Shown here: piece by piece, positions 16,793 to 54,505 of the stretch
How the letters are laid out: each line of letters opens with the position of its first letter
How positions within the stretch are numbered: the stretch's first letter is position 1
Assembly (NCBI GenBank): GCA_038496445.1
Contig: JALMLS010000307.1
Location: 1 to 64,000, forward strand
Direction: 5' to 3'
DNA length: 64,000 nt
DNA from: Trichosphaerium sp. ATCC 40318
Lineage: Eukaryota; Protista; Tubulinea
Program-made: the position numbers and the translations under genes
Notes under the pieces: model-generated
What the model saw: the letters and a program-made list of their open reading frames with translations, nothing else
The model's database searches: none
Told to the model about the DNA's origin: nothing

Positions 16793-19700
16793 TAGATACT
16801 ACCTTTTCATAATCTACAAGCTATATAATCCGTAGTCCCAGAGCTTCCTTAGGTAGTAAAGTGTCATCTGAAGTACCTACAATACGTGATATTGTACCGA
16901 CAAGATATTGGAGTTGAGGTGTTTTTGAACTATGTAGCAATGCTTACAGCAGTGGGTTGCTTAGATTGTGATCGAGTTCACAAATATATTACGAGGAAAG
17001 ACTCTTCTCTTGCCTATACATTAACGTATTTCGAATATGTCCCTGATGATCTTTCTTGAGCTTGTGTAGATTGCTACATAAATACAAGTGACCACCCTGG
17101 GTAGCGATTTCCTAACGTGTACAGCCTTCATTGTGTTATGTACAATCCAAAGAGTTCTGTACAGCTTAAGGGTTCTTAAGGCAGTGACGCTAACCGACAG
17201 CATACATCAAGTGGAAACAAGGCCAAGACTATATTCAAATTATCACTATACGTTTGTACGTTGACGTCACGTTTTGTAAACTCACTTTTTTTTCAAAGGT
17301 TATTTGGCTTTAGCGCTATTATTCTACGTATTGTTGGGCTTGCTTGAATGTTATAGAGCTCTGCAAGGTTTTGAGAGATTGTTCCCTAAGCGGTACGTTT
17401 AGATTTTGAAGAAACCGTATTTGAAACCCACTTTACGCTCGTATTTTCGAATTGCGAGCATCGGAAGCTGTTTTTTTTTTTTCGCCGGTTTTTGACTAAA
17501 AAACCCATGTGATACTTGGTTTTTTCTTATAAAGATGTGAGAGCACAAAGTAGGCTTTAACCATGTTCCAAGCTACTACGTTCATTTTAACAATCTATTT
17601 GAAAAAAAATGAAAACAGCTTTTGTAGTGAGATATTGTAACCGTTCTACAACCATTCCTTGAGGTCCTAACTGCCGGCGTCTCAGCAACTGAACTCATCA
17701 AATTACAAAATTATGATAAAATTGTCTTACTTCAAACTCGGGCTATTTCTACGCGTGCAAAGTGATTATAAGAGGTTTTCAGAGAGTTAAAAAGTGACTC
17801 AAGATGACGCGAAATGTAAAAAAAAAAAACTGTCACGTTTTTACTTTTTGGTGAAAGATTTGGTATTCTATTCCTTTAAAACAATGTTAAGTAGGCTACT
17901 TCCAAGGTTCAAATACTGTTCGAGTCTTTTATGTGAGGCAACGGAGTAGGATTTAGTTAGGATGTACACTTAAGGCACATAAGAGATATTTTAACGACAC
18001 GTGTTAGTATAAGATACTGTTGATGATACTCTGTGATGAATCAGCTGCAACGCATAGCTTTGCTTGCCTTCGTGCGGCGATTTTGTGTGATTTGTGAGTT
18101 AGCCTGTAGGTGTCGCTATGCGCCAATACGTATGAAATACAAGTTGGCTCTGTTAGGATCAAGGTGAAATTGTTTTGAAGCTGGCGTTCGTGAGCAATGG
18201 ATGTCTTCACTATCCGCGTCACTTTGACCTTTTGAAATCCTCAAATATCCCTTCATCCGCGGATTAATCTCTTCCTCCATTTCGACCTAATAGATGTGGA
18301 TTGTTACCGGCTACAAAAATTCATAACCGAACGTCCAAAATCAGAATTTTATGAGAAATGTTTTGTACGTCACTTGGTACTTTTTGACAGTATCTGGTTC
18401 CATTTTTTAAAGTCAGGTATAAGCAGTTATAGCGGTTATGAGAATTATCATTACAGGTTTTACTTTCCTCTCAATTTCTTTGCAGCATACAATTCCGTGT
18501 CTATTCCAAAGTATTTAGTGTTAACCTGGGTGAAGAATTTTTTATATCTACTTTTGTATTTTGACATCTTGTTTACAAAGAACAGACAAAAACTCTCAAA
18601 CATTTTTTCCCTCTCTATGATCTTGTTATTAATTTTTTTTAGATTAAAAATAGCAAGATTATGTCTTCTCGTTCTTCCTCTCCATCCTGTATGAGTTTAT
18701 TGGATATCCCGTGTGAACTTCAACAGTACATTTGTACTTTCAACAAAGAAGTATTCACGAAGTTCCATTCTCTATCAAAAAGAGCAGCAATCAACACACA
18801 TTTTGATGAAGCATTAGAGAGAAAAGGAAAATGGATCAGATGGTATAACAGTGGTACTGTACAGGTCCACGAATATGCAAAAAATGGACTTGGCAACATG
18901 TGGTATGAGAGCGGAGCAAAAAGTGCACAGTACATGGTCTGTAATGGCAAAATAGAAGGAAAATGTACTAAGTGGTATGAAAATGGACAAAAATTGGAAC
19001 AAACAATGTGGGTTGCCAATAAAATGACTGGTGAAGGCAAACAGTGGTACGAAAATGGACAAATGTTGACACAAACAATGTATGTTGATGATAAAATAAC
19101 TGGTGAGCACAAAGAGTGGTATGAAAATGGACAACTTCATGTTCAAGAAATGTGGGTTGACGATAAACTAAATGGTGAATGCAAAGAGTGGTATGAAAAT
19201 GGTCAATTAAAGGCACAAACAATGATGGTTGATGGTAAACAAAATGGAGAGCACAGAGTTTGGTACAAAGACGGACAACTTAAGACACAACAAATGATGG
19301 TTGATGGTAAAAACCATGGTGAAAGCAAAGAGTGGTATGAAAACGGACAAATTATGACACAAACAATGTATGTTGATGATAAAAGGAATGGTGAAGGCAA
19401 AGGGTGGTATGATAATGGCCAACTTAAGGTACAGATAATGTTTATTGATGGTAAACGAAATGGGGAATACAAAGATTGGTACAAAGATGGACAACTTAGG
19501 ATACAACAAATGGTGGTTGATGATAAAAACCATGGAGAATACAAAGAGTGGTATGAAAACGGACAACTTATGACACAAACAATGTATGTTGATGGTAAAA
19601 ATAATGGTGAATACAAAGAGTGGTATGACAACGGACAATTAAAGACACAAGCAATGTTTGTTGATGATAAACCAAATGGTGAGGTCAAACACTGGTATAA

Positions 19701-20018
19701 AGATGGACAACCATTGCGCTAGATATGTGGGTTGACAATAAACTGGTGAAGTCAAAGATTTGGATGAAAACAGACAACTTATAAAAAATGTGAAGATAGA
19801 GGACAAAAAGATATTAGATGTAACCCAATAAAGTGTTAGAGCACATCACTATGATATCAAGTTAATATATTTAACAGTTGTACTATAGAAGGAACAATTG
19901 CTCAATAGACACCTGCTATAAACGGATCAAAAAGTCACGTGTATGAATAAGTAAGAAGTATTTCTAAGTTTTGCTATTGTCTACATGTGCTTTCTTATTG
20001 CTCTCACGCCTCTGTTCA
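16793..20018 (+). repeat. Cassette copy A (spacer + MORN gene + downstream block)
   Basis: 16793-16969 aligns with rc 54112-54290, 16970-18034 with rc 51268-52303, and 19752-20018 with rc 51004-51264. More diverged direct match to 38400-39130 and 40050-41523. Confidence 0.9.
18661..19722 (+). CDS. F-box-like + MORN-variant repeat protein (intronless CDS; 3' end damaged)
   Basis: LLDIPCELQQYI N-terminus and about 11 units of 24 aa, GExKxWYxNGQLxxQxMxVDxKxN. The broken terminal repeat continues after the stop (19723-19794). Confidence 0.85.
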   Translation: MSSRSSSPSCMSLLDIPCELQQYICTFNKEVFTKFHSLSKRAAINTHFDEALERKGKWIRWYNSGTVQVHEYAKNGLGNMWYESGAKSAQYMVCNGKIEGKCTKWYENGQKLEQTMWVANKMTGEGKQWYENGQMLTQTMYVDDKITGEHKEWYENGQLHVQEMWVDDKLNGECKEWYENGQLKAQTMMVDGKQNGEHRVWYKDGQLKTQQMMVDGKNHGESKEWYENGQIMTQTMYVDDKRNGEGKGWYDNGQLKVQIMFIDGKRNGEYKDWYKDGQLRIQQMVVDDKNHGEYKEWYENGQLMTQTMYVDGKNNGEYKEWYDNGQLKTQAMFVDDKPNGEVKHWYKDGQPLR

Positions 20019-20325
20019 GTGAGTAGATAGCCTAAATTCTTTTCATCCTTTCCAAGTTCACGACGTTTTTTCTACATTAGACGTTATGCAAGAGCGCTAT
20101 AGAGGCTTTCCAGTAGCGCGTACTTGTAAAAAACTGGTCAAAGCAAAACAACGCAGTATGACCCCATACTGCCGCTAAAAGGCTCATTCAATCCCCTTTG
20201 CACTAGAAATTGCTTTAAGACGTATGTAAAGGGCGCCAAAGCTCGAAACTTCTTCATTAAACCTCTGATTATTTCTGTATTTTCTCTGCCATTAATTATA
20301 TTAAAACTAACGTCAACCTTGCACC
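20019..20325 (-). pseudogene. Duplicated fragment of the TRF4/PAPD5 gene (exon + intron + partial exon)
   Basis: Near-identical reverse complement of 49250-49557, including the intron GTACGCGC...TTGTAG. Confidence 0.93.
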
Positions 20326-21432
20326 TTAGCTCACTTTCAATGTAATGTCCACATTTGTCCCAACTGGAATTGACCAGAACAATAAAGACATCTTTACTTT
20401 CTTACAATCGTTGTACCTTTTCTCTCATTATCAATGTCGAAAGGGTTCATGTAACATCACCATATTTCGAGTCTCATAAAAATTTATACCCAATGTATCA
20501 ATACATTTATTGAAGATGATACTGTATCTCTCTTATCAAGTGTTGACTAGCAAGCATATGCAAACCATAGATGACTACTTCCAAAACACACTTTTCTGAT
20601 AGATAGTCAGTGTTCGCTTATGTTAGGCCCTTTGCTTTGCAATGGGAAATAAATATTTACCTTCCCTCTCCTAAGGTATGCTATTGGTGGTATAGTATTT
20701 TTGGACCATTCGACTTCGACATATGAATGTCTTATTTTGGGTAAAGTTTCAGTATTCTCCCGAAATTTCGGTAGTTTCGCAGTATCCTTATTTGAGGTTG
20801 GTAACAGTAGTATGAAACTGGTAAATATCTATTACATAGCATTGGATAGTGTTTCCTAGGGAAGCGACTATTGGAAAAACGTTGTTGGAATCGATTTTCA
20901 GAAAAATTCGAAAAAACCCACATGTTTGTTACTATTTACAGTATTTATCTAGATAAATAAAAAGCGTTTTGTATTGATTATTGTTGATTACTTTGTTATT
21001 TCGCGTATACTGTAACTTGAAAACGAATTGGAGTACTTGAAAATACGAAAAGCTGAAAAACACAAAAAAATCCAATTACCGTAATCAATCCGCTTCTAAT
21101 TACACTTTGTTGCCACTAATATTATAAGTAATAGATAGAAGATACTTAAGAGATAGTTAGCGGGTATAAAAATAAGACTGACTATTTATAATTATCAGAA
21201 AATGAAATGCCGAAAAGTGATACTTAGGAATATTTATTTTCTATTTTTTCAACTTTCTATTGATACATTTTTACAGCCTGGTTTTTTGCTTAATATACAA
21301 TGGGACTATACCCATACACCCGAAAACTAGCATTACAAACAATGCTTCTTATTCTAACTCAATTTGTTATCAATCAAATCGTCCAAACACCCAAACGTCC
21401 AACGTTCTAGCATTTTTTTCTGTTGACCACTT

Positions 21433-22336
21433 TCAAGCTCTTAGCGCCTGTAGTTGTGATAAATCATCAAGCGTAGGGCTTGCTTTTTCACTACTTAGCA
21501 AACCTTCGCTAATAGTAGAAATAGAAACCTCTTCAGTATTACCCACACCGCTCTGTTTGGCGACGAATTCAGTGAATAAATCGTATTGTAAAAGATGTGT
21601 AATTTCATCCCTTGAGTTATCAAATAATTCCAAATCACCCTTCTGATAGCTATTTTGTATAGCCTTAAATAGTATATAAGGACTCAGAACGATAAACGAA
21701 GAAAAGAAAAAAAAAAACTGCACACTTTACGTTGTGCCGTTTTAAATACTCTGGAATTCAAGTTTTACGCCCATATACGTACAATTCTTTGCTCGTATGG
21801 AATATTTACCGGTTCGGGACACTTTGCGAGGTCAATCCATTTTTGAAAGATACGCTTCGCTAGCAGCTTACGCTTCTCTCTACTCTCTGTTCGCTCGTAT
21901 AAAGCTATTTGTATAAAATTAGAAAAAACATCTGCGACGGTCCATTTTTGTTGTTTTGAGTCTACGTACCAACTGCTGTTAGGAAAGCAAGGTTTTCACC
22001 AGCCATATTGGATCTTACGAACTCTCTGAACTTTAAAAACAGTTCTTCGTCTACAAACAACTTTTTCCATTCATCTGATACTGACGGTAATTCTTGAGGC
22101 GTAGGAGGTATTCTAAGCGATTTTCTAGAAACAGCTCTTCGGAAAAAAAGTCAGCACGAAGTTATAGCGTGTAAACGGCGTGATAATAAGCTTACAACAC
22201 GCTAGTAGTAAAAACAAGGTTTTTGTAGAGAAGCATTCACGGGAAAAGCCAAAAAAACTGGAAAAGTTGTTTACCTTCTACATGCCTTTAAACATCGTGA
22301 TATTGATTTACTGGTACTCCTCTTTCTACTTCTCAT
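21433..22336 (-). CDS. RGS (regulator of G-protein signalling) domain protein (multi-exon)
   Basis: FLKFREFVRSNMAGENLAFLTAV, AKRIFQKWI...PVNI, LFDNSRDEITHLLQYDLFTEF. Start codon uncertain. Confidence 0.8.
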
Positions 22337-24762
22337 AGTCTAAGCAGATAGGAATGAAATTTGTAGAAAAGTTGTTATGATAATATGCAATTGCACTTTT
22401 CTTCCGTTTTTTTCGTATGATTTCTTACGGTTTTTTACCGCAAAATCTGAAATTTCACCAAACAGTCAAGAAACGTCTTCGGAAAATGTTTCTCGCTCTT
22501 CCACGAACCCATTTTTCTGTATTTATTATTACCTTTACAGTCTGTACATTGTGAATGTTTCCTAAAAATGAATTTGATTTTGGTAATCGGAAATGTCACG
22601 AAAAGGTTACGTCAACATTCTCGGAGTCTGGATTTTTTGTTTTATCCTTTTTTGGAACACATCAACATTTTTTGAGTTTGGTGTTTAAGTATAGTATACA
22701 TATGATACTGTTTATGATGGTTATTATGTTTCCATTCATTTGAGAAACCAAAGAAATGATGGAGTGTAGTTTTTTTTTAGCTTCTTTTTCGAGCAATGGA
22801 ACTTCTTTGTCCCGTTTTTGTCGAATACGTTAGTACCAATTCTCACTCTGCATACTAAAGATGTATCACACTATGTATACAAACACGCTTGGCTTCATTG
22901 GTATGAAAAGGAAACACGTGTACATGGGGTTAGCAGTCCCAAAAAAAATCCCAAAAAACAAAACACTATCATTTGCTTATTTAGCGGCTTTGTATTTATT
23001 TAAACGTCCCTTGTTAGAGTTTAATGGCGCCATAAATAGTCCGTATTTTCCACAGTACGAAGGCGATAACGTGACAAAGTTAGAAGTCTGTAAAACCTCA
23101 TCGAGTGACCCACTAATCACGATATAACGATAACTGTTCTGCTGCGCAACACTTCATTGCAGAGTTCATTCCAATAGAAATATTTCTATGCGTAATGCAT
23201 ACAGTTAATTTGACACCCATAGAGGTTAAATACAAACTTGTACAGAAGTTGTCTAAACTAAGAGAGTGACTTCCTTTTTTGGAATTTTCAGTATTACCAA
23301 GAGTTCCGAAAGCATAAAACAGAAATATGCATACGTAGTAGTTTCACGCTAAAATAATTACCAATCTCTAGAAGCAGGTATTTAAAACCATGCTTACACT
23401 CACAGTTGTTTACAAAACTTTCTATTCGAAAAAAAAGAGAAAACTCTAATTTTAGACATATCTCCTGTACTTTTTGTCAGAGGCTCAATTCAAGTGACTA
23501 GTTATCATACATGGACATTCGAGGATCGTTAAAAGTTCAGAAAGCGCTCAGAACGCTTGTTTAAAAGTGGTTTTTATTCGACTTTTTGGTTTTCTTTCCA
23601 GCCTAGAAAACAATTCTTCTTTTGAATCACTTTCATCGTTTACTATTTAGTTAATTACTTCATCAAACTATTCTAAGTACTTACGATTGTTGCTAATTAC
23701 TTAAAAAGACCGTATTTGGATGAAAATCAGCAGTTATGAGTTGTATAATGCCAAAATTAGAAACCTGCAACAATTTTTTTTAACATTCTGATCGTCACAC
23801 GATCTCACTGACTACAACAGTTAAACAACACTTCGTACGTATGACCTAATTAACTATAGTTTCAACAATTTCTTGCAACACTCAGATTTAATGACACTAT
23901 TCACGTGCACGTTACAACACCTTATTCCGGTAAGAAACAACATTGTTGGAGAAATACTCAAAAAAGGGTTAACGGACTACAAATGCAATGATTTCGCGTC
24001 GCCGAAAGAAAAAATTAATTCGTATCAATTATCTCAAGTAGTGTTATCTTGTTGAGCCACCATTGAGTTGGAAATCGTACGTCTCCAGTGGATAATTACT
24101 TTCCTTTGTATCGCTGCATTAATATCCATACATAAAGGTAGCATATATTCCATAAGGGGGCAAGTAATAAACAGAAGTTGCGACGGCAATACCGCAGCTT
24201 AACGATAATCCCATTTTTGAGTTCCTCATAACCCAAACAATTCCCATGCCTCATATTAATACTGAATAGGCGCTGGTAAATACATTGAATTTTTGCTTGG
24301 GTAACGAAGTGTAGGCTCACAGTGATGCAAAAACGAGATTAAAATAGAAAAGTGCAGAATACAGAATGGTACACTTTTGATTCTTCGTAGAAAATATCCA
24401 CCACAGTGCTGCTGAAAGGTTAGATTAACAGTAGAACATTTACAGTACATCCAAAACCAGTATTTTCGGAAAACTAGCCTGCTCAGGTTTAAGACACCTT
24501 TCAAAGAAACAAGAGTCAGAAATACAGGTAATCTATTACACCAGTTTATTTTAAAGCTTTTGCACTTTTAGCATCATTACGCTTATGAACGCACACAAAG
24601 TAGTACAAGAATGCAAGCCATTGATTTCTATGATTTCAAAACATTGAAAGCTGTTTGAACTTACGTGGTGACTCCGGAGAAACAAAAAAAAAGAATGTGA
24701 TGTGAACAAACACGTGTTTGTCCAGAATCATGTTCAATCCAAAAGATGTGTATACTCTTCTT

Positions 24763-25706
24763 TTACATCATAACACAACGTCTTTTTGTTTTACTAGGCT
24801 TAGGTTCTTCCTGTTTTAAACGTTTTGACATCTCCCGCACAAGTTGGTGAAAAGCTTCTTCAACGTTAACACTTGTTTTAGCTGATGTCTCAAAAAAAGG
24901 TATTCCGTAATGTTGTGCAAGCTCTTGACCTTCAGATGCTTCCACTTTTCTCTCTTCTTTGAGATCAACTTTACCACCAACTAATACAGCACAGTGGTAC
25001 TCTGGGCCCTTAATCCTATCAACAGAAAGTGAGATGATTGACCTTAATCAGTCTCTGAAAAAATTGTTTGAACCACGTGAGTTTTTCGTATCTTGCTCTT
25101 CGCACGTACTCGGTAATAACCTTGAAATACTTTGGTATTTCCTCAAATGTGCTGCGGTCTATAGTGGAATACATAACAAGATACCCTTCTCCGGAACGGA
25201 CACTCTAAAAAACCAAAGTTAAAAACCTTGCTACCGAAACTCCTTCCGAAAATGCAAGCGCTCTGGAGCTGTATGTGAGCATTGAATTGTATAGTGCTTT
25301 TCAGAACTAGCATGCATATTGTTATACATCATATATACATTATGTACAAGCATAGTTTCGCCCACCCATCCAAGAAAAAAATCCAAGAAGAAAAAACGTG
25401 TCAAAAAATATTTACCATATCAAGCAGTACAGGAGGCTCTCCTCTTCCTGCTGTATCAAGAATATCCATCACCACTGTATCATCATCTACTTTGACTTGT
25501 TTACGGAATCTAAAATGAGTGTGGGTCTTTGTTTTGTCGAAAACCAGTTAACAAGCCTCAAAATAGCTTAAAACTGTCTAAAACGCGTACGAATCTTCTA
25601 TTGTTGGGTCGTATTCACCAACAAACTGGTCTGTTACCAATCGCATCGACAGGCATGATTTTCCAACTCCGGGTTCGCCAAGAACTACTATTCTGTATAT
25701 TGACAT
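24763..25706 (-). CDS. Ras-subfamily small GTPase with atypical G-boxes (4 exons)
   Basis: [17 protein letters not shown], effector loop [35 protein letters not shown]-terminal KRRCVMM CaaX. Confidence 0.9.
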
Positions 25707-26156
25707 CAATGGTAATACAACTATTGTGTTTTAATGTTGTAATGTCGTACAATTTACAATCAAAGTCGTACACAGTCAAATAAAATTCTCTGAAACATTT
25801 TACCAAGCACAAAAATAGCAACAAGTTATTTGATTATGACGTGGTTTGTAAGGTACGTATATTCTTATTATTAATGGCAAGTGGCACTTTGACATCGTGA
25901 TAGATTTGACGGAGTGTACAGATCCGTAGACTTGCTAAAAGTGCAGAACTGTAAACTTTCTAATAATAACTTGTTTATCGCATTTCATGTTTTCATCATT
26001 CGTTTCACTGTTATTGAACGCGTATATTAACTAGTCTTAACAAGTGTATACACATGGTGTTAAATGAAAATGTGAGCCTGCGAAAGTCGAACTCATTGTT
26101 GCTTTGGAACAAGAATGATCTTTTTTTTTTTTTGAGAAGTTTTTGTTTTTTATTTT

Positions 26157-28469
26157 CTAAACACCTTTTTTGCTTGCATTTAATACATCCATAACTGGTT
26201 TACATTGACGTACAATACGCTCAATATTCTTATCAGGAACCAAACCTTCTTTTTCAATAGCATACTTTAATATATCAGCAGCATGTTGTTCATCAATTTT
26301 ACGAAAAAATTGTAAAAGATACAACATACCATCGCAAGATAACTTAACCCCTCGCTCTCTAATATCATTATACACTGTATCAACAAACTCTCTATACTCC
26401 TTTGATTCCGGCATAGAACTCAAAATAATCTTATAGTGTCTTGCAGTGACTGGAACTTGGTTTTTTGAAAAAATATCAAGAACCTCAAGAATCCTTTTAA
26501 AGTCTTTTTGTTTTCTAAGCAATAAAAACACGCCTGTAAGTGCCTTACTTGTAGGTTTTGTTCCTGCATCTAAAGCAGTATGAATAGCCTCCATACAAGC
26601 ATCCATCCTCCCATAACGAACTGTAGTCGATATAACATATACATACGAAGAATGATGTTTGAAATGTCCCATTTCTTGGATTTCCTCAAGTGAACTCTTC
26701 ATTAAGTCCATTTTACCCTGTTTTATGCATGCTGATAGAATAGAGGAGTATACTAATGAAACGTCCTTTTCATTATATCTACGGGATGCAATCATTAGGT
26801 ATAAGTACTTCAATGCGTCTTGAAGTCTTTCGCAATCACATAATCCATCCACAAGGAACTTGTACGTGTAGAAGTTAGGAGATACAGCAACAGCGGCAGA
26901 AGCCATTTCGTTAAATGTTTCAATAGCTTTATCAATATAAGCAGTACCATACGACTAGAGTTAAGGGTGTAAGCATTAAAAAGAAAGAAAACAGCAATAA
27001 GGAAGTAAGTCCACAGAAAGGTAGACAAAAGTTCACATTGACAAAAACAAGAAAAAAAAAAGAATTGGTTTTTTTCAAAAGCTAAAGAAGAGATGATCAA
27101 TCGATTTGATTCAAAAAAAAAGTTGGAAAACGTAAACACCTGTTTTTCTTCTAGTATAATGTTGCCAAGTTTAGATGATAAAGTAGTGTAAAAAACAACA
27201 AAAATGTCATTGTAATTTTTTTTGAAAAAACAAAAAAGAAAAAAATGTCATTGATGATTGCAGTCATATTACGTACTCTTATTATGAGTGTATAAGTTAA
27301 TGTATTCTTAATAATCTTTCTTTTCTCAATATGATGTTTCCAAAACTTTCTAGCTTTACTTAAATCACCTTTCTCAATATGTCCACGCAAGAAAGCATTA
27401 AGTAACCCAATATCTAACTTATCTCCCTTTTTTTGTTCTTTACGCAGCTCATGTAGAAGAGTCTCAAACCTCCACGTCTGGTTCTTTTTAACAAAAACAG
27501 TAACCATAGTGTTTAATAGAGGAGAATCAGGTAAATGGCCGCAAGACATCATACTATTGAAGTAATCAAGCGCCTCCTGGTATTTACCAACCCTTACCGC
27601 GTGCATAATAATTGTAGAGTAGTCAGCAAGTCTTGGTTTTAAATCGCTTTTACGCAGTAGCTCAAAAGCGCTAAAAGCGCTTGTAGTTCTATTAGATATA
27701 ATAGCAGCTTTCATTAGCGCGTAAAAATTCTGTTCATCAATTGTATGCCCAGCCTCCGCGTATTTAAGCAAAAACTCTTCTGCTTGTTGGAACTTCTTCC
27801 TTGATGTATACATAGACGTTATAGCATTTGCGAACTGAGGATCACCTTTAAGACCTTGTGTCTTCATTCTCTCATAGACATCCAAAGCAGCGCCAATATC
27901 ACCTGCTCTTGAGCATACTTTGACTAGAGATCCGTACGTGTCGACACCCGGCACAACTCCTTTCTCCTTCATTGTCTCAAATACAGGTTCTGCTTGCTTT
28001 AAGTTTGGAGCAACTGATATAATGGCGTTCCATACGTTTCTATGCGGAGAGAACTTTGCCAATATGTCGTAGAGCTGTTTTTTGGCATATTTGAAGTTTT
28101 GACTTCCAGAAGCTGTTAGTATCAATTGCGCTTCCGCAGCACCTGTTGTAGCAGGCGTGTAGTCTTCTTGAATCTGTTGCGCGTGATCTATCATTTGATT
28201 TACACGTTTAGCGACATGACACACTAAATTAGCGTACCTGACGTTAAATAAGACTCGAACTTGTCTTTTGGAGCATCCTTTCTAAAAAAAACTGTTAAAA
28301 CAATTTTATGACATACAAACCTTGAATATCGTAGCACAGTTACACGCGTAGAGCGTTTGACACCCTAATATATTGTAAGAACGCTGTTTATACTCACCAA
28401 AGGCTACAAGCGTACATAATCGCGAGTGTAGGTACCAAAGCCAATTCTACTCGCTGACAAGCGTAGCAT
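26157..28469 (-). CDS. Pentatricopeptide-repeat protein, probably mitochondrial
   Basis: Tandem 35-aa PPR motifs (TYGSLVKVCSRAGDIGAALDVYERMKTQGLK; TYKFLVDGLCDCERLQDAL) and Arg/Ser-rich leader MLRLSASRIGF. Confidence 0.85.
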
Positions 28470-28629
28470 GTCGCCTACAACACAGACAAGACAAAGTCAA
28501 AATAGAGTCAACGAAACAAAACTCAAAAATGCTGTCAAGAAAGAAATAGACGTCGACTACAAAAACTAACACCGAGGGAAATTAGATTGCTGTTTATTGG
28601 TACTACAAGCAAAAAATGAAAGAAGGAAT

Positions 28630-29463: not shown

Positions 29464-29568
29464 TGCGGCGGAGTTCTTGAGCTACTTTGAGTATGCGTGA
29501 CCAAACACTTCCTAATTAGGAGATTTGTTGTTTTGAATTGTAGTCACTTACGTCACAAGCTCATAGTC

Positions 29569-30871: not shown

Positions 30872-31277
30872 AAGTATTCTTTCTTTATCGGTTGTCAACT
30901 AATAAAATGAACCACGTCAATACGTGGCGTTTATTTAAAACTCTGTCGTATTGTACCATTTGGTTTTTTTTAGTCAGGTTGGCTTTTTTCACTTTGTTCG
31001 CCTCAGTTTTGCGTACTAGTCGCCCGGGCTTGGTTGTTATACAAATCGGGCGTTGAAAGCGCTTTCTAGCGCCAGTGCGACAATAATTGGTTTTTTTGAG
31101 CGGTAAAATGAAAATCGAGCTATCCAAAGGCATTGCCCGCGTGGTAGCAAGTATGAGAAATCTCCACAACGGCTCTAGTTGTCATTCACAAGAATGAGCC
31201 GACAAAAAAAACCGCAGGAGAAAAAGTAGTGCACCGAATGTGACACATATCCACAAACCAAAAAGCATCAACTCCCG

Positions 31278-33954
31278 ATGGCGTTTAAAAAGACACTAAA
31301 GAAAACGAAAAGCTCTGTACGAAAGGGGTACGTGTAGCCCAAATGTTAAAATAGCGTTTTCATAGTCGTCATGCTAGGAGTAACAAAGCTCTTGGATTTA
31401 CTAAGACGGAACTTCTCATAAAGGATGCCACCTCTTCTACCAAGTGGGGGCCTACATCAGCACAACTAAGGGTAACAATTACCAGTTTTTATTATCCCCA
31501 AATATAAAAACACGTTCTAACGCACGTGGGGTTTAGGAACTAGCGGCAAAATCTTTCAATTATGCCTCATATCAAGATTTGATGAATATCGTATGGAAAC
31601 GCCTCGGATCTCATGGTAAATACTGGCAGCACGTGTACAAGGTTAGAATTTAAAACAAAAGACCCTTTCGTTGTTATTTTTCTCCATCAAGGCTTGTAGC
31701 TCTTATGTGTCGCGATTTTTGAACAAAACAAGCACAGCCATACTATTTGGACAAAAAAAGATGGTTTTTATGCTGACAGCCCTATCTGATTTTTTTTGAA
31801 TCCGAAATTACCTTACTTCTACTCCTTGATATTTGTGGTTATTATATACCGAGCTATTTATCCGATCACGTGATATTGGAGTGATTTTAATTAAAAAAAT
31901 AATTTTTGGTTTTTTGTATCTGAAAAATAATGACGTCATTTAATCATCACTTTAGTCTCTTGTTGTTATTCATTATCTTCTTCTTCACGGTGCTCCTTCT
32001 ATCGAAACTGAAGTTAAGACGCGTATAATCGAGATAAAGACATTACAACAGTTCGTGAAGCTTAAAAACGGGAGAGATTTGGGTCTCACAGGTGCGTACT
32101 CAGTACTAGTCTTTTTTTTTTTGTTTTATTTTTTTGGTTTTGACGATTTCTAGTTCGGGAACGTGCACGACTTGTTGTTGGTCTTATAGAAAGTAAAGGA
32201 GCTCTAGAGGCAGCAAGAAAAGTAGCTAAAAAGAACCAAGATAAAGAGTTTTTGAACTCATCCTTTGCACCAATAAAGTACGACAAAAGAAACCTTTTGA
32301 TTTTTTTTTTTCGTTTTTCTGTTTTCCAAGCGATGCTTTGCACGTGTTACTCAAAAAACACTAACAATTAATTCTATAAGACAAGAAAACGATGATGATG
32401 AATCAAATAGCGGTATGAGTGGTGACGGATCAAGCACTGGACCATTAAGACACAGTTCAGTTTCTTCAAAATCAAGCACAGCAAGCAGAAACAGCACCTT
32501 AAGCACTCCAAAAGCGAGTTCAAATGGCAAATCAAGGAGTGGCTCACCTAAGCGTATGGGCGCTAAATCAGCGCCTATTTTAGTGTTTAATCCGTTTGAT
32601 GATTACGACGACGCGCCAAAGGAACCTACAAAATCGATTACACCAGAACCTAGAAAAAAACCTAAATCGGTATCATCTCCACGTGCTGCTGAACAATCAA
32701 ATCATAATATTCAAAAACCATCTTCTGGTTTTGATTGGTCTATAAAAGGTGGTATTGGCGCACAAATGAGGGATTTATTTATGAAGCTTGATACAGATAA
32801 CGACGGGTGAGTTTATTTTTGTTTTTTTTTTTGTTTTATTGTTTGTTCTTTTTATTAATGCGTTTCCGCGGAAAATAGGTTTATAACCGGTATTGAGGCT
32901 CAAGGATTACTAAAAAAATCGGGGTTGTCCGTATCAATACTTGCAGAGATATGGGATATGGCAGATGAGGATAAAGATGGTACGACATTCGAATGAGCAC
33001 AGTACTTTTACTTAACACAAAAAGAAAAAGGAATTTTTTATGTGACACCAGCACTTTCAAACGAACGATTTTCTACACAAAAAAATTACATTTATAATAC
33101 AGCTTGCCTATACGCCAAATTAAAAAAATTTGCGACGTGTACTTCTGGCTTTTTAGATAAAAACAGAAAGCTGAAAAGACGAAAACAGTTTTTTAAGTTT
33201 ACCCACGTGAACTGATTTCTAACTCTTTGATACAGGCAAACTAAGTCTAAGAGAATTCGTTATAGCAATGTCTTTGACTACAGCAATAAGCAAAGGAGAA
33301 CCAATGCCAAAGTACGTATTTTTCTCTCCCTCGATTCATTTTTGAAAAAATTAACAAAAAAACTTTTTAGATTCCTTCCTCCTGGCCTAGAAAACTCTTT
33401 ACCTCCAAAATCAGTACCTCAGATACAAGCACCGCCATCCTCATTCCCACATGAAGTCAATGGTCTTTTTTCAGTATCACATGGTTCCGTTGCTAGTGTT
33501 GCTCCAGTAATGGGTATGCAACCAAATAACGGTTTGTATAATCACGGATACCCAGGACAACAAGTACGTCAACTCAATTATTAATTTCTTTTCGTGGATA
33601 TTTTTTTTTGAGGATTTTTTGCTTTCCTCATTTGGACGGACTGTACCGTCCTCCTTACGACCTTTTTTGCTAAATTTTTCTTCCTAGATGCCTGTTACCC
33701 CAACAAGTCCTATGCTGAATAATACACCTCAAATATTAAATATGAATAGCTTCAACACTCCACAAGTACAGAATCAGCAATATCCTTTCCAAGCAGGAGG
33801 ATTACATCAAGGTCTATTTAATCCTTATCAACCTTCAACTGCTGTTGCTTCTCCATCTACTTCAGAGCGTAAAAGAGCAGTAGTAAAACCGATCACTGGA
33901 GATCCATGGTCACATGATAATCTACTGGATCTCAGCAGCCTTTCAGCGAACTGA
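31278..33954 (+). CDS. Epsin-like ENTH-domain protein fused to an EH domain (multi-exon)
   Basis: ENTH: KDATSSTKWGPTS, IVWKRL, YWQHVYKSLVVIHYLLLHG, VRERA. EH: LFMKLDTDNDGFITG...KSGLSVSILAEIWDMADEDKDGKLSLREFVIAM. NPF, DPW and LLDL motifs present. Confidence 0.88.
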
Positions 33955-34267
33955 GAGGAAAGAAGAAAAAGGCTCAACTCTGAAGTATACTTATAATTGT
34001 TTTCCTCCTCTGTTTTATGTTGTCTTTTTTTTTGGAACACGGAAACGCCTGTATCAAGAACTACACTGTTAAATAATAATAATAGCGCTGTGTTTCAACA
34101 TGTAAAAAGCTGACTTATTAATATGAACTTTTGACATGACTGTTTGTTTTTAAAGAAAATTTTGGTTGTATGAACTTCTAAACTACTTTGATATTATGTT
34201 AGCAGAGTAGCAACAAGGGTAGATCTAGAATATGAGGTTTATTGACAATACAGGACTTTCACAGTAT

Positions 34268-34782
34268 TTACACCCATCCGAGTTGCTTGGAGCTAAAATG
34301 GTCGTTCCAGACTTTGGTCACATGATAAATCTTTCCATCTTTGTTGGTATGCATAATATGTACAAAGTCGGTTTCACATGTCTTGCCAGTAGCTGGTTGC
34401 GGTCCTCCAGTACCTTTATGAGTACCATAGAATCTTCCAGATCCCATGTAGATGTTGTTAGCTCCAGAAAATGAATATGCTTTGTACGAGGAACCAGGGA
34501 AGGTATCGATGCATCTCTCTAAAACAAAGTGGTTAGACACTTAACAAGATATTCAACAAATCACGTGACAAAGATACTTTATTTTCTTAACATACCTTTC
34601 AACCATTCAGCATATGCTTTTACTGTTTTGAGATCTTTGAGAGCCTCAGTTTGAGCTTCAAATGTTGCATCTGGTGTTATGTACTTCTTGACACCTTCGA
34701 ATCCTTTGCCAGTTTCAATAGCATCAAAAAACTGTTTGATATCTTCCATCTTTGTGTTGCTTGTGTTGTTGTTGCTTGTCAT
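34268..34782 (-). CDS. SnoaL-like / NTF2-fold ester-cyclase family protein (2 exons)
   Basis: FFDAIETGKG...DATFEAQ...YAEWLK and FYGTHKGTGGPQPATGK...KIYHVTKVWND...LGW match a pattern I recognise from bacterial SnoaL-like proteins. Confidence 0.75.
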
Positions 34783-35381
34783 GTTTCTATTGTGTTGTTT
34801 TGTTTTGTACTAATCTATCTATTTAAGGCATAGGAGGTGCGAATTCGTTGTATTCCGTGTGACCAAAATGGACAAAAATGTACGAATTCATATTTGTACG
34901 TCGTGTCAGGTTACATCGCACTGGTAGAGAGTGTTAATGCCCTTATGGCTTTAGGGTTTTCTAAACGCTGCGGGTATGTTGCGATTCTTCCGCACAATCC
35001 TCCGCATACGCTATGATTCGTCATAAATCACAATTTTTGGTTCACTGAAGGCATCTAAACGTTCGAGACTAAAAGCAGTCTCGTACGTTTAGATTTTGCC
35101 TGTAGGTTTACGTGACTTTCTTACACTTCTGATGAGTTTAAAACAATAGGTAAAGTTAAAAGAGACGTTTTTCTAAACGAGAAATCAGTCTGTCAAACAA
35201 ACCACCAGTAAATGCAAGAAACTGTTGATTTGTCATTTCTGAGTCTTTATCTCCTCAAAAAAAACCGTTTATAACTTTATTTCTATAAAATTGTACCATA
35301 GCTTTGCGTATCATGTAGAAGGACAACGTTGGGTACAGTAACTTTACTTGTCACGTGTTTTTGTCGAGATCATTTGGTTTT

Positions 35382-36893
35382 TTATAATTTCTTGTTGGTT
35401 GCATTCCATACGTCCATAACAGTTTCTCCTTGATTGTTTTTTATGTTCCAATCCATCTCGTCATTTATTAAACGTTTGGCCAATATTTGGTCTCCATTTT
35501 TAATAGCAACCATGTACGCTGTATTACCTTGATCATCTTGATGATTCGAATTGTAGTCTTTATGATGGCCGCAAATGTAATCAACCAACTTGTGAGGGAA
35601 AATCTCTCTTCTTCTTACTAGATCATGGCTGAAACTATACGTATGCCTTCCGTCACAAGGTAGGACTTTGCAAACAATCTCTTGAGACATATCAACAAGA
35701 ACAAAAGATACAGTCTTGTTATGTATACCAAAAGGTTTATGTATCTTCATCTCTTCAAAGTTTGGTGCATTTTCACATATCAGAACAACCTTGTCGAACA
35801 AACGCAACCTGAGTAATAACCAGAATAACTCTGTTTCTCCTAACAAGTCAATGATATATTCCATATTCTCTTGTGTTATCCAGTTTGGTTGATGGTACAA
35901 AAAACTCCAACCTTTGTTATCTCTTATGGTAAAGTCATAATCTTGTTGTACTCTTCTGACATCAAAGTTTTTAATGACATTGCCAAGGTATATGAGTGAA
36001 GTCTTTCCTGATAAGTCACGTGTATTGGTGTTACTATGGTTGACAAGGTATTGGTACACCGGATCATCAAGTATATCGTCATCGTCAAAAGACTGAAACT
36101 GTTCAATATAACGCATCAAAGGTATTCTACCAAAAGCATCTTTTTCATGAAAAACGTCATCATTACCGAGATGCTTGTGCCAAGCCTTAACCTCTTCTAT
36201 GCTCATACATTCTTCCCAAATATGGTTAATACAAATGTTATCGTATATAATATGACCACAATCATCTATGTATTCAAGAAAGGTTTCGGTATAATCAAAC
36301 TCATAAGGGTCAACTTCATCATCCGAACAACACTCAAACTCGCACTCTTCAACGTTTTGAGTAAACTCAGGATCAAAGTACCCCAGTACTTTATTGCACG
36401 TGTCTGTCACGTGATTAATATCGGCGACAGAACATATACGTTGAGAAGCGTGGATTAAGATGAATAAAGCCTCTACAGAGAACGTGATATCAAAGCAAGA
36501 GTAGTCATTGGCAATGTTATGTACAATAGTCGACATCGTCACTGTGTCAAGCACTTGTTCCCTTAAATTAGGTCGTATGTATCCCAACAGGACTGGCAAG
36601 TATTGCCAATAGTATGAGGTAAAGTCTTGACCTGAGAATAGCGGAAAATCAGTAGTATATAATGGGAAGTGTTCTCTGTGACTTGCTTTCAAGCATTGTG
36701 GGCTTAATAATGATATTTGGCTGTAAAAAAACTTGCATGTCCTTTTTATTGCAATAGGGCTCAATATAGGATCCGCTGGTGGTCTGAATACGATAATTTC
36801 GAATATTTCAGGTGGAAGTGACATAAAGGGCTGATTAGAATAGGTGTTGGTCTGCATTGAAAAGCATATTTGTTTTGAACGAGGTGCGAACAT
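35382..36893 (-). CDS. F-box-like + ankyrin-repeat protein (intronless)
   Basis: FMSLPPEIFEII...IKRTCKFFY N-terminus and ankyrin-like DAFGRIPL, DLSGKTSL, DDQGNTAYMVAIKNG, NIKNNQGET. Confidence 0.75.
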   Translation of the reverse strand: MFAPRSKQICFSMQTNTYSNQPFMSLPPEIFEIIVFRPPADPILSPIAIKRTCKFFYSQISLLSPQCLKASHREHFPLYTTDFPLFSGQDFTSYYWQYLPVLLGYIRPNLREQVLDTVTMSTIVHNIANDYSCFDITFSVEALFILIHASQRICSVADINHVTDTCNKVLGYFDPEFTQNVEECEFECCSDDEVDPYEFDYTETFLEYIDDCGHIIYDNICINHIWEECMSIEEVKAWHKHLGNDDVFHEKDAFGRIPLMRYIEQFQSFDDDDILDDPVYQYLVNHSNTNTRDLSGKTSLIYLGNVIKNFDVRRVQQDYDFTIRDNKGWSFLYHQPNWITQENMEYIIDLLGETELFWLLLRLRLFDKVVLICENAPNFEEMKIHKPFGIHNKTVSFVLVDMSQEIVCKVLPCDGRHTYSFSHDLVRRREIFPHKLVDYICGHHKDYNSNHQDDQGNTAYMVAIKNGDQILAKRLINDEMDWNIKNNQGETVMDVWNATNKKL

Positions 36894-37449
36894 GTTTTTA
36901 GCTGTAAAGTTGTATGCCGGTGGCTTAATCGCACGTGACTACTTGTTTCCAACAGTGGATCCATAATAAGTGTACAATGGTATTCCAGTGCGTCATCATA
37001 GTTGTTTTGAGTATTCGGCGCGAACTTGGTAGGTTTTGACCAAAAAAAAAGCTGTTCTTAATCGGTCTGAAACAATGTATGCTCCTAAGGTGTCTGCGAG
37101 CTCTGTGTGGGTTCGGACTAACTTTTCGATCTACCAGGACATTTTCAAAATAGTTCCAGCTGAGGTATGCATCACGTGGTACGTTAAACTGCACGAAAGA
37201 GATTTGGACAAGAATCTTTGACGATTGCAGAAACATCACGGTACTGGCAGCCTGTAGCGGATTGACAACAAATTTCGGGATATTCTAACCATGCGATAGA
37301 GATAGCCTGGGCATACTCTAACATTTGTTGAAAACGAGTGAAAGAACTTTTTTTTTCGATTTTTTTTTAAATGTTCTAGAAGCTTCTAAAATGATTTTTC
37401 TCAGCGGTTTCACAATTTTAGCAACTACAGTAATAAACACCGCCCACTC

Positions 37450-38331
37450 ATGTTGAACTGGTTCTCAAAGCTTCCAATTGAGCTATCTTCCTCGATTCTT
37501 AAGCTTTTAAAGCACGACAGGTTCAATGCAGCTCAAACTTGTACCAGCTTCGCAAGCATCATCCGTGACTATCTTGGGTATGTTGAAATCCATCTGTTAA
37601 CACCAGAACACGCAAAGTCTGCATTGTCTTTGCAAGGTGTAAGAGAAAACTCTGAAACTTTCGTATATGATACTTGTATGATACCTCACGTGACAGGAAT
37701 GAAATGGATAAATCTCACCAAGTGTCGAACACTACAGAACATCCATTTACAGCAAATGACTAAAGTCCATGGATTAGATATTAGCAATCAAGAGTTTATT
37801 AATGATGATGGTATAAAATCTCTATCTGGTGTTCATACGATCAAACTTCGTCATTGCCAAGGTGTAACAGATGAAGGCATAAAAGCATTAAAAGGAGTAC
37901 ATGCGATTAATCTGTACGGCTGTAATAACATATCAGATGAAGGGTTGAAGCACTTGACTGGTGTCAAAAGTATAAACCTGTCAAGGTGTTCACATATTAC
38001 AGATGAAGGTATAAAACACCTTGGTGGTGTACACACCATTGTATTAACACGTTGTTGTAATATAACAGATGAAGGGATATCTCACCTTTCAGGTGTACAT
38101 ACAATAAGTTTATTTGATTGCTATCAAGTGACCGATGAAGGCTTGAAATCATTGAAAGGCGTTTCGAAGATTTATCTCAACTTTTGTCATAATATCACTG
38201 ATGATGGTATTAAAGCACTTGTGGGTGTGAAGTTTATCGATGTTACAGGTACACAAGTTACCAAAGAAGGTGTTAAGTGTCTTGGAGATGCAAACATTAA
38301 ACTGGTGTACCAGCAATGGGGAAAACAATAA
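37450..38331 (+). CDS. F-box + Cys-containing LRR protein (intronless)
   Basis: FSKLPIELSSSILKLL...AAQTCTSF and 22-aa repeats GVHTIxLxxCxNITDEGIKxL. Confidence 0.88.
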   Translation: MLNWFSKLPIELSSSILKLLKHDRFNAAQTCTSFASIIRDYLGYVEIHLLTPEHAKSALSLQGVRENSETFVYDTCMIPHVTGMKWINLTKCRTLQNIHLQQMTKVHGLDISNQEFINDDGIKSLSGVHTIKLRHCQGVTDEGIKALKGVHAINLYGCNNISDEGLKHLTGVKSINLSRCSHITDEGIKHLGGVHTIVLTRCCNITDEGISHLSGVHTISLFDCYQVTDEGLKSLKGVSKIYLNFCHNITDDGIKALVGVKFIDVTGTQVTKEGVKCLGDANIKLVYQQWGKQ

Positions 38332-41300
38332 ATAGTTTTGGATTTGAAGGTATTATTTTTGTACATCACAAAAATGGTTGGTAGCGGTATTCCATAAGCG
38401 GATGCTACCATTTAAGAATCTACGAGCCATATAACTTGGTAAAAGGGCAGCTTCTGTAGGTACTTAAAAAAGTTTTTCGAAGACCTACAACACGTGATTG
38501 ATTGTACCAACCAAAATGGAGTTAAAATGTTGTTGATCTACAACAAGAATGGCTATTGAGTTTGCTACGTTATTAGTGCGTATTCTCAGAGGTTTCAAAA
38601 TGCTTAACATAAAGTTTGTTTATTGTATATCGCTTGGTGTTGACCTACAATAGTCTACAACGGCTGGTTGATTACATTGCGATCAAGTTTTAATATTCTT
38701 CTACCAACACAATAAAGTAGTTATGTTGCTTGAAATAACCGCAATCCTTGAGAGCTGACTCTTCAAGTAGGTCGCTTGAGAATACAACCTTCTCTTGCGC
38801 TACCTACGATCCAGAGAGCAGTTCTTTACAAAAGATAACAAGCTTAACCAAAAGGTTAAGGCAGTGAGCACTGACGCTAACCTACAGCATACATCAAGTG
38901 GAAACAAGTCCAAGAGTATAGAATTAGCACTATACATTTGTACGTTCATGTCACGTTTTGTAAGCTCACCTTTATTTCTCAAGGTTATTTGGCTTTAGCA
39001 CTTTTATTCTACGTATTACTGAACGTTGTGGAGCACAAGGTTTTGAGAGATTGTTCCTCTAAAAGGTATGTTTAGACATTAAAGAAACCGTATTTGAAAC
39101 CCACCTTACGCTCGTATTTTCTAATTGCGTGAAAACAAGCTGCATTGTTTTACCACAAAATAATTTCTCGTAAGTTGTTGCTGTTGGTTTTTGTGTTGAC
39201 TAAGAAACCCACGTGATTGTTGTTGTGATACACTAGTGTTTTTCTTATACATTAGTGGTTTGTACGCGACAGAGAGAGCTTTAGAGAAAACCTGTTATCG
39301 ACTTGACTAGGTTACGCCAATTTGGTTATTGGCTCATATTTAAATATGAACGTCGTTGACTTCTTTGTAAGCCTCCAGCTAGAGATGCTAACGAAGCGGT
39401 TTCAGCTTGTAACGACTTTTTGGTGTGTAAACGGTTTAGGCCAAAGTGAAGCCATTAAAAAACATGGAAAAAAAAGAGGAGTGACGAAGGAATTAGTTTC
39501 GTTTCTTGGGTTTTTTTGCATTTTTTCAAACTTTTTTTTCCCACAGTCGGAAACAGATCTGTATTTTTTGAGCGTAGAAAATGTTGTTTGACATTGTCTC
39601 ACATTTTAAGCGCCTCAGTTTTTTAGGTAGTTTTCGGAAAAATGTGCAAAATTAATGAGTTTGTTCGTATTCGCAGTTTGAGAATAAAAACCGAATTTTT
39701 GACTTAAACAGTTTACGACTCGAGTCGATTTTTGCGACAGTTTGCCTTTAATCCACGCTGTTCAGCGACAATATTCCACTGAATTGTAGTCCTTGAGAAG
39801 TCGAGGTTTACTGGTTTTCAGAACCTAAACGGTTAACCGGTTTGTAAGACTTCTAGCTAAAAAACCGTATTTCAGGTTTGAGAATTCAGAACCTAAACAC
39901 CTTCACAGGTTTGCTTCCTCGCAACAGTGTGGTGATTTTGTTTACCTGATTGTTTGAGCGGATTTAGGATCACGTTAGTTGAGACCATAACGTGACATTA
40001 AACCTAAGGAGTTAGTTTCCGCTGGTTGTCAGCTGATTTGAATGCGTTCGGATCAAGGTGAGATTGTTTCCAAGCTGGCCTTTGTTAAAGATGGATGTCC
40101 AGTACCTGTATCACTTGTGTCTGTAGAGAGCCACAAATCTCTCTACTGCTTCAACCTAATAAATGTGGCAATGGCCTTGTCCCGGCTGAACCAACAAAAT
40201 TCATATCTGATAAGAAACCGGAAACTAAATCAGAATTTTTTGAGAAATTTAAGCAAGACATAGTATTTAAATATTTTCGTCCTACTCTCAATTTTTTTTG
40301 CAGTATACATAATTTCGTGTCAATTCTAAAGTGTGGAGTGTTACCCTTGGGTGAAACGTTTGTTATTTATCATTTTGTTTGCAAAAACTCTCAAACTTTT
40401 TTTTTCGTACTATTATGTGTGCTAATCTTTTTCCAGATTCTAAAATAAAAAGACTATGTCCTCTCTTTCTTCCTCTGCATCCTCTATGAGTTTATTGGAT
40501 ATCCCGTGTGAACTTCAACAGTACATTTGTACTTTCAATAAAGAAGTATTCACGAAATTCCATTCTCTATCAAAGAGAGCAGCAATCAACACACATTTTG
40601 ATGAAGCATTAGAGAGAAAAGGAAAATGGATAGGATGGTACAACAGCGGTACTGTACAAGTCCACGAATATGCAAAAAATGGCGTTAGCGACATATGGTA
40701 TGAGAGCGGAGCAAAAAGCGCACAGTACATGGTTTGTAATGGCAAAATGGAAGGAATATGTACTAAGTGGTATGAAAATGGACAAAAAATGGAACAAACA
40801 ATGTGGGTTGACAATAAAATGACTGGTGAAGGCAAAGGGTGGTATGAAAATGGACAACTAAAGGCACAAACAATATATATTGATGGTAAAGAAAATGGCG
40901 AGCACAAAGATTGGTACAAAGACGGACAACTTCATACACAAAAAATGATGGTTGATGATAAACACCATGGTGAATACAAAGAGTGGTATGAAAATGGCAA
41001 ACTTATGGTACAAACAATGTATGTTGATGGTAAAAATAATGGTGAATACAAAGGGTGGTATGATAATGGACAACTTAAGGTACAGATGGTGTATGTTGAC
41101 GATGTAAGAAATGGAGAAGTCAAAGAGTGGTATGCCAACGGAGAACTTCATGTTCAAGAAAAGTGGGTTGACGATAAACTAAATGGTGAATGCAAAGAGT
41201 GGTATGACAATGGTCAACTAAAGATACAAGGAATGTTTATTGATAATAAACCAAACGGTGAAATCAAACACTGGTATAAAAATGGACAACTTAAGAACAA

Positions 41301-41523
41301 AACAATGATGGTTGACAATAAACGAAATGGTGAAGTCAAAGAATGGTATGAAAACGGACAACTCAAAGTTCAAGCAATGTGGATTAATGGTAAAATAACT
41401 GGTGAAGTCAAAGAGTGGCATGTCAATGGACAATTAAAAGCAAAAGCAATGATGATTGATAATAAACTAAGCGAATTCAAACAGTGGGATGAAAATGGCC
41501 AACTTATAAAAATGCAAAGATAG
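38158..41523 (+). repeat. Cassette copy C (LRR 3' end + spacer + MORN gene), the most diverged copy
   Basis: 38158-38331 matches rc 54335-54505; 38856-39130 matches 17176-17456; 40050-40455 matches 18156-18660; the MORN CDS is paralogous to 18661..19722. Confidence 0.85.
40456..41523 (+). CDS. F-box-like + MORN-variant repeat protein (intronless CDS, intact)
   Basis: N-terminal ~120 aa nearly identical to ORF 18661; 24-aa repeats ending EFKQWDENGQLIKMQR*. Confidence 0.88.
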   Translation: MSSLSSSASSMSLLDIPCELQQYICTFNKEVFTKFHSLSKRAAINTHFDEALERKGKWIGWYNSGTVQVHEYAKNGVSDIWYESGAKSAQYMVCNGKMEGICTKWYENGQKMEQTMWVDNKMTGEGKGWYENGQLKAQTIYIDGKENGEHKDWYKDGQLHTQKMMVDDKHHGEYKEWYENGKLMVQTMYVDGKNNGEYKGWYDNGQLKVQMVYVDDVRNGEVKEWYANGELHVQEKWVDDKLNGECKEWYDNGQLKIQGMFIDNKPNGEIKHWYKNGQLKNKTMMVDNKRNGEVKEWYENGQLKVQAMWINGKITGEVKEWHVNGQLKAKAMMIDNKLSEFKQWDENGQLIKMQR

Positions 41524-52391: not shown

Positions 52392-53850
<1,459 letters not shown>

Positions 53851-54334: not shown

Positions 54335-54505
54335 TTATGTTTTTCCCATTGCTGATACACCAGTCTAATGTTTGCATCTCCAAGACACTTAACACCTTCT
54401 TCGTAACTTGTGTACCTGTAACATCAATAAATTTCACGCCACAAGTGCTTTAATACCATCATCAGTGATATTATGACAAAAGTTGAGATAAATCTTTGAG
54501 ACGCC
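54335..54505 (-). pseudogene. Frameshifted 3' fragment of an F-box/LRR gene, paralogue of 37450..38331
   Basis: Near-identical reverse complement of 38158-38331 with small indels. Confidence 0.88.

Follow-up and report, generated by a model that had tools for sequence, protein, structure and literature searches.

Reordered MORN_2 repeat units in two paralogous genes of Trichosphaerium sp. ATCC 40318, an arrangement within reach of tandem duplication and deletion

The DNA analysed here comprises positions 1 to 64,000 of contig JALMLS010000307.1 (GenBank assembly GCA_038496445.1) of Trichosphaerium sp. ATCC 40318, and this whole stretch of 64,000 nucleotides (nt) is called the window. It carries two intronless paralogues, gene A (18661-19722, + strand) and gene C (40456-41523, + strand), both of which are uninterrupted open reading frames (ORFs) according to the ORF list and the translation, and which encode a short constant N-terminus followed by an array of MORN_2 repeat units. 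The arrays of A and C are collinear at their ends and not in their middle, where one unit stands on opposite sides of the same block of units. We read this difference, with a probability of roughly 0.75, as ordinary repeat-array recombination in germline paralogues of a birth-and-death F-box-like/MORN_2 gene family. An initial annotation of the window had described the reordered units as recombinational module shuffling that creates new specificities on a constant N-terminus, analogous in logic to variable lymphocyte receptors (VLRs) and transcription activator-like effectors (TALEs). Its observation is correct, and its interpretation is overstated. The locus is a clean worked example showing that tandem duplication and deletion in an array can mimic the shuffling of units.

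Gene A encodes 353 amino acids (aa), namely the constant N-terminus of 55 aa and 12.6 MORN_2 units, and gene C encodes 355 aa, with the N-terminus as in A, 12 units and a terminal partial unit (ORF and translation, Pfam, unit table). The N-terminal 55 aa differ between the two genes at 7 of 165 nt. The Pfam family MORN_2 ("MORN repeat variant", PF07661), whose gathering cut-off is 29.6 bits, matches A with 150 bits (E = 3.9e-46) and C with 144 bits. Each unit was taken to begin at the G of G-E-x-K-x-W-Y and to occupy 72 nt, or 24 residues, and the unit numbered 1 in the initial annotation, which starts at 18958 in A and at 40753 in C, is A3 or C3 here; its unit coordinates and 72-bp register were correct. 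Tandem Repeats Finder (TRF) reports a 72-bp period in both arrays, and a 216-bp period of three units scores higher (825 with 79% matches vs 460 in A; 645 vs 510 in C). The unit-to-unit DNA identity is 62-92% for units 3-11 and lower for C12 (unit matrix). Among the 20 canonical units, positions 1, 2, 4, 6, 7, 9, 10, 11, 15, 17, 19, 20 and 22 are nearly fixed, position 12 is mostly Leu, and positions 3, 5, 8, 13, 14, 16, 18, 21, 23 and 24 are variable, with position 18 restricted to Y, W, F, M or V; this agrees with the fixed scaffold and widely varying positions described before.

On the basis of the unit identity matrix and half-unit mismatch counts, array A reads 1 2 3 / c' Q / a b c / a2 b c / d e / tail and array C reads 1 2 3 / a b c / a2 Q / d e 11 12 / tail. 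At the ends, A1-3 correspond to C1-3 with 88-97% identity, A12-13 (d e) to C9-10, and the terminal partial units are homologous; A12-A13 and the tail keep the same (D/E)N - KD - EN rhythm. In the non-collinear middle, unit Q (A5 = C8) precedes the a-b-c block in A but follows it in C, and the reversal of relative order proposed earlier is borne out by both the matrix and the half-unit counts. The same holds for the segment reported as almost nucleotide-identical, since 19135-19196 and 41146-41207 share 61 of 62 nt, compared with a background of 44.6 +/- 6.3 matches for in-phase 62-nt windows between the arrays, among which only the positional orthologues A3/C3 equal the Q segment.

The patch containing this segment covers 19135-19212 (+) in A, where it consists of the tail of A5 and the head of A6 and precedes the a-b-c block, and 41146-41223 (+) in C, where it consists of the tail of C8 and the head of C9 and follows the a-b-c-a2 block. 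In its extended form (19138-19212 vs 41149-41223), 72 of 75 nt are identical from the middle of A5/C8 to the middle of the next unit. A second pair of stretches, 19534-19644 and 40969-41079, is identical at 100 of 111 nt; it comprises A11-A12 and C6-C7, which are units 9-10 and 4-5 of the initial annotation. The longest inner block collinear with A is C4-C7 (a b c a2; 40825-41112, +), equivalent to A6-A9, and 252 of its 288 nt are identical on a diagonal shifted by +2 units. The automatic segment finder merges adjacent segments, and its output was used for long diagonals only.

Both arrays bear the usual marks of unequal crossing-over, namely the 216-bp super-period, a three-unit duplication and units with mixed partners. 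The tandem duplication of three units in A covers 19174-19605 (+) and comprises A6-A8 and A9-A11 (TRF, unit matrix), with 88% identity between A7 and A10 and 92% between A8 and A11. As for mixed partners, the half-unit counts give 2 of 36 mismatches between the heads of C9 and A6 and 5 of 36 between the tails of C9 and A12, and the head of A5 has four mismatches each to the heads of C6 and C7 as against eight of 36 to that of C8, to which the tail of A5 has 1 of 36. The apparent switch point in these chimeric units is the conserved W-Y-x-N-G-Q-L stretch. A tree of the 72-nt units groups A5 with C8 at 80/76 and A7, A10 and C5 together at 96/95; it is poorly resolved, with 2 of 17 branches well supported, and cannot settle the history.

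Short assembled contigs from four small public runs (X1-X4) were used as independent data on the assembly. Without a single difference, the junction from Q to a in A (19098-19251) is reproduced by a contig from run X2, and 19179-19498 by one from run X1. A contig from run X3 carries the gene C order c, a2, Q, d; its 33 bridging letters equal 41088-41120, and the following 30 differ from C at two places. The reversed unit order is real and not a misassembly, and because another sequence, not identical to C, shows the C order as well, that order is inherited.

A breadth-first search on strings of unit types, in which tandem duplication and deletion were the only moves, found that the A order can be turned into the C order in three events and by no two-event route. 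The three-event route duplicates Q-a-b-c-a2, deletes c'-Q and deletes six units from a to c. Since such a route exists, A and C may be collinear once tandem gains and losses are allowed, with which the route is compatible, although the history is not unique. Of the recombinational shuffling on a constant N-terminus, the rearranged arrays and the constant N-terminus stand, and a distinct shuffling process does not, because duplication and deletion suffice. The number of synonymous substitutions per site (dS) is 0.14 in the Q patch and 0.20 in A11/C6, as against 0.13 in the collinear N-terminus and 0.22 in units 1-3. Because the dS of the displaced parts equals that of the collinear ones, the rearrangements are about as old as the gene duplication, and the synonymous divergence of the Q patch and A11/C6 relative to the collinear parts gives no sign of recent or continuing exchange.

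We therefore favor a sequence of events in which A and C would have originated as germline paralogues by gene duplication (dS of about 0.13-0.22), and the inner array would then have been remodelled through homologous recombination among diverged 72-bp units. This probably took place by unequal crossovers, in which whole numbers of units were duplicated or deleted, often three at once, and the end units remained collinear; a short ectopic gene-conversion tract with its ends in the conserved W-Y-x-N-G-Q segment may have contributed. In the order of events that we infer, a duplication and deletions on either side of Q would decide which copy of a-b-c survives; the order looks reversed because the a-b-c block is itself tandemly repeated. 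Growth in mid-array by several units at a time with conserved ends is a documented general pattern in repeat proteins (Bjorklund et al. 2006, PMC1553488). The A/C locus shares with that model the three-unit duplication, the restriction of changes to inner units and the conservation of end units, and it differs in nothing of substance, so that it can be taken as an example of the model.

Selection was compared between scaffold and variable positions by the ratio of the proportions of nonsynonymous and synonymous differences (pN/pS), where pS was pooled across all codons within each unit-pair comparison. For the best-matched A/C unit pairs the ratio is 0.22 at scaffold positions (Fisher p = 1.6e-4) and 0.78 at variable positions (p = 0.34); for the duplicates within A it is 0.19 and 1.30 (p = 0.63), and for the other matched pairs 0.21 and 1.12 (p = 0.84). 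In the collinear regions, the ratio of nonsynonymous to synonymous substitution rates (dN/dS) is 0.18 for the N-terminus and 0.24 for units 1-3. The scaffold is under purifying selection, and the variable sites are indistinguishable from neutral. Under the proposed mechanism, the scaffold residues would be kept by purifying selection and the remaining positions would drift at a nearly neutral rate. The claim that new specificities are created does not find support here, since the variable-site dN/dS of 0.8-1.3 is not different from 1. In the matched pairs A3-A12/C3-C12, pS is 0.05 at variable and 0.29 at scaffold codons, so that synonymous differences are much less frequent at the former; this contrast is probably an artefact of the similarity-based choice of pairs.

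The AlphaFold2 model of C has a predicted local distance difference test (pLDDT) score of about 98 over the repeats (residues 80-355) and shows two strands per unit, at unit positions 1-6 and 12-19, joined by five-residue loops at 7-11 and 20-24. In a Foldseek search of the PDB, the top matches of this model are MORN1 crystal structures (E = 1e-8 to 3e-10), and both the hairpin array of the model and these matches are in line with the extended MORN beta-sheet assumed in the initial annotation. Faces were assigned from DSSP strand limits and residue parity, and the DSSP limits fit a predicted pairing of position 6 with 12 and of position 19 with 1 of the next unit. By parity, E2, K4, W6, L12, 14, 16 and 18 would lie on one face and G1, 3, 5, 13, Q15, M17 and V19 on the other. 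By analogy with MORN1, the face with E2, K4 and W6 would correspond to the aromatic groove that serves MORN4 as its binding site (PMC7725318). Within strand 2, position 13 is predicted to face opposite to 14, 16 and 18, and position 8 and positions 21/23/24 would lie in two opposite loop rims. The strand parity of the model thus places variable residues on both sheet faces and both rims, rather than on the one variable surface that had been expected. The extended beta-hairpin array probably binds a partner protein, and the N-terminal three-helix module is probably an adaptor.

Several points weigh against our explanation. There are two full arrays only, and the event history is accordingly not unique; the junction signatures depend on few mismatches; the head of C8 mismatches the unit predicted by the duplication step of the three-event route; and the matched inner units are 82-98% identical, a range wider than one age gives. 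With regard to selection, a dN/dS of about 1 at some ten sites per unit is also expected from a mixture of positive and purifying selection, and best-match pairing pushes the variable-site estimates down. Because of this downward bias from similarity-based pairing, there may be weak positive selection at the variable sites.

It is also possible, and we consider it a tentative alternative, that a single short ectopic gene conversion copied the tail of Q and the next head (about 75-100 nt) from one position or paralogue to a non-homologous position, with separate insertions and deletions setting the unit number. The patch is approximately one period long, its identity of 96-98% falls to 78% in the flanks (the heads of A5 and C8, with their eight mismatches), and both of its ends lie inside the conserved W-Y-x-N-G-Q-L segment, as such a tract would predict. 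However, one conversion and two indels make an event count equal to that of the duplication/deletion route, and the divergence of the patch is not significantly below that of the N-terminus (1/62 vs 7/165), so there is no sign of recent transfer. Such a conversion is, moreover, a sub-case of repeat-array recombination and not different biology.

We regard it as unlikely that out-of-register recombination between the paralogous arrays has been selected for new specificities, giving a diversifying repertoire, for example of substrate receptors of SCF (Skp1-cullin-F-box) complexes in host-virus conflict. In its favor, there is one truly non-collinear unit together with a mosaic of divergence levels, dN/dS is about 1 at non-scaffold vs about 0.2 at scaffold positions, the N-terminus is F-box-like, and the genes stand beside F-box/leucine-rich repeat (LRR) genes within segmental duplications; in nematodes and plants, the substrate-binding parts of expanded F-box families are under positive selection (PMC8120010, PMC3719486). 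Against this, dN/dS is not above 1, the variable positions would occupy both faces and both rims of the modelled sheet, a single element is non-collinear between the two genes, the C order is stable in the second data set, and the premature stop and decayed tail of A and the deleted copy B have the look of birth-and-death turnover. The broader proposal, that F-box-like/MORN_2 genes and the adjacent F-box/LRR genes are a fast-turnover substrate-receptor repertoire of a marine protist with recurrent, selected array exchange, for example against giant viruses, is in our judgement highly doubtful. If it were true, it would describe a protist receptor repertoire diversified by repeat-unit exchange and give a functional lead for the poorly understood MORN_2. 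Unit order, dN/dS, surface parity and tblastn of the window provide no evidence for a dedicated diversity-generating system at A/C.

Tandem arrays misassemble easily, and yet a mis-joining of the repeats during assembly is extremely improbable here, because contigs of X2 and X1 cross the diagnostic junctions exactly, X3 shows the C order, the units are just 62-92% identical and both ORFs are intact.

The analogy with VLRs and TALEs does not extend to the defining features of these systems. A VLR starts from an incomplete germline gene, flanked by hundreds of donor cassettes, that is assembled somatically. TALEs consist of near-identical units of 33-35 aa that differ at two residues and bind DNA. 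What A and C have in common with lamprey VLRs and with TALEs is only the logic of modular repeats with variable residues on a fixed scaffold. Unlike VLRs, A and C are complete, uninterrupted ORFs with neither a split gene nor a donor-cassette array, and tblastn of the window finds only A, C, gene D, one two-unit fragment and a 15-codon remnant, the last two being stray fragments. Unlike TALEs, they have no near-identical units: their units are 62-92% identical in DNA, vary at about 10 of 24 positions and adopt a beta-sheet fold.

Closer likeness is found with MORN_2/YwqK-type proteins (PF07661; MORN1 PDB 6t4r and 6t69, PMC7725318), as the motif scores far above the Pfam threshold and the twisted single-layer beta-hairpin sheet predicted for C is that of canonical MORN1 structures. 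The A/C units differ in having 24 aa with additional fixed residues Q15, M17, V19 and D20, and in the N-terminal helical module attached to them. A word-indexed protein search returned generic MORN_2 proteins only, with at most about 35-53% identity and over the repeats alone, and exact sequence look-ups of A and C gave no match. Metagenomes contributed nine loci, all of them generic MORN_2 genes; L001, the one that was inspected, carries a different N-terminus.

Another point of comparison is the expanded F-box receptors (F-box/LRR, F-box/FBA and F-box/Kelch; PMC8120010, PMC3719486). A and C resemble them in a short constant N-terminal module with L-P-x-E-(I/L) and a three-helix model that matches F-boxes, in variable C-terminal repeats, and in lineage-specific multi-copy genes located in segmental duplications beside F-box/LRR genes. 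They differ in that the module is undetected by Pfam F-box models and a partnership with Skp1 is putative.

The constant N-terminal module of A (18661-18825, +; counterpart in C, 40456-40620) has an L-x-x-(L/I)-P-x-E-L motif and three predicted helices, and it is probably a divergent F-box-like three-helix module overlooked by Pfam. A search with residues 1-100 against 1.84 billion representative proteins found 18 proteins that share the module, with E down to 2e-15; all seven that were traced to their source are MMETSP transcriptome or JGI metagenome records, and all ten whose sequences were read have MORN_2-type units after the module. The module consensus is L-L-x-L-P-x-E-L-Q-x-x-I ... K-W-P-x-L-S-K ... 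T-R-F-D ... K-x-G-K-W. Even with a threshold of E <= 10, Pfam F-box models find no match in A, C or D; of the ten relatives, nine likewise have none, and one (P0123) is matched across 12 residues with E = 0.1. When the PDB was searched with a profile of the module, nothing was found, and hhalign against the three F-boxes of the neighbouring F-box/LRR genes aligned 18 columns at the L-P-x-E motif (E = 0.006, probability 6%). Three helices are present in the AlphaFold2 model of residues 11-63 (pLDDT 82). Its sole match in the PDB is an LRR-F-box ligase with E = 4.5. Among its 30 best matches in AFDB Swiss-Prot, 29 are F-box proteins in which the alignment falls on the F-box; for many of them the root-mean-square deviation is 1.4-2.0 A over 34-37 residues, and each match is individually insignificant (E = 3-9). 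With its F-box-like N-terminus, the family, which is represented in several transcriptomes of marine protists, gains a testable candidate function as an SCF adaptor.

Other members of the family in the window are distant, broken or deleted. Gene D (46529-47650, +) is a distant MORN_2 member that is approximately 23-30% identical to A and has an L-P-R-E-L motif at its start. A fragment at 16220-16520 (-), detected by tblastn and three-frame reading, is frameshifted or intron-split, with the N-terminal T-R-F-D...K-H-G-K-W motif in one frame and about two MORN_2 units in another, and it is a pseudogene or an intron-split gene. Cassette B (51004-52303, -) is an inverted segmental duplicate in which 52303-51265 matches 16970-18037 and 51267-51004 matches 19749-20018; its upstream flank (85% identical) is joined directly to its downstream flank (87%), with no counterpart of 18037-19749, the 1.7 kb in which gene A lies. 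Of its MORN array, this third copy (B) retains just the final 15 codons (51221-51265, -; self-comparison and translation). Gene A itself terminates at a premature TAG (19720-19722) within unit 13, and the following 19723-19800 (+) is a decayed 3' tail. This tail, with what is left of unit 13 followed by the terminal partial unit, shares homology with the C-terminus of gene C. About 1.5 units are recognisable in it, broken by the stop and two small indels (alignment, three-frame reading). Since copy A is truncated with a decayed tail and copy B is deleted, the family is one of birth and death.

A 93%-identical contig present in runs X1 and X4 is likewise without change at the TAG of gene A. At 19490-19610, the depth of short contigs from run X2 that match the G-E-Y-K-E-W-Y-E-N-G-Q stretch goes up to about 295, and their flanks are varied; this part of the unit is therefore common to many other copies, expressed or genomic.

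The surroundings of these genes look eukaryotic, with about 36-38% GC, few long ORFs, and actin and PPR genes. The genome of the marine amoeba Trichosphaerium is reported to have a GC content of 37.7%, with F-box and MORN as the commonest domains among its putative giant-virus-derived genes (PMC10521059), and the window is in keeping with this. A giant-virus insertion at the locus was considered and is ruled out by the actin and PPR neighbours, the flat GC and the absence of a viral match; a search of viral contigs for relatives of the family found none.

F-box/LRR genes lie beside the A/C genes in segmental duplications, at 37450-38331, 54565-55863 (-) and 55738-56844. The two ORFs in 54565-56844 are arranged head to head with an overlap of about 125 nt and share a 71%-identical inverted repeat (55538-55725 vs 56267-56080). 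The F-box/LRR gene at 37450-38331 has a 3' end with 93% identity to 54328-54505. An actin gene fragment (52392-53273, -; Pfam Actin E = 3.7e-103) lies in cassette B between an F-box/LRR gene and the flank shared with A. Directly after the A cassette, 20016-20325 has a 311-bp inverted duplicate at 49560-49250 with 96% identity.

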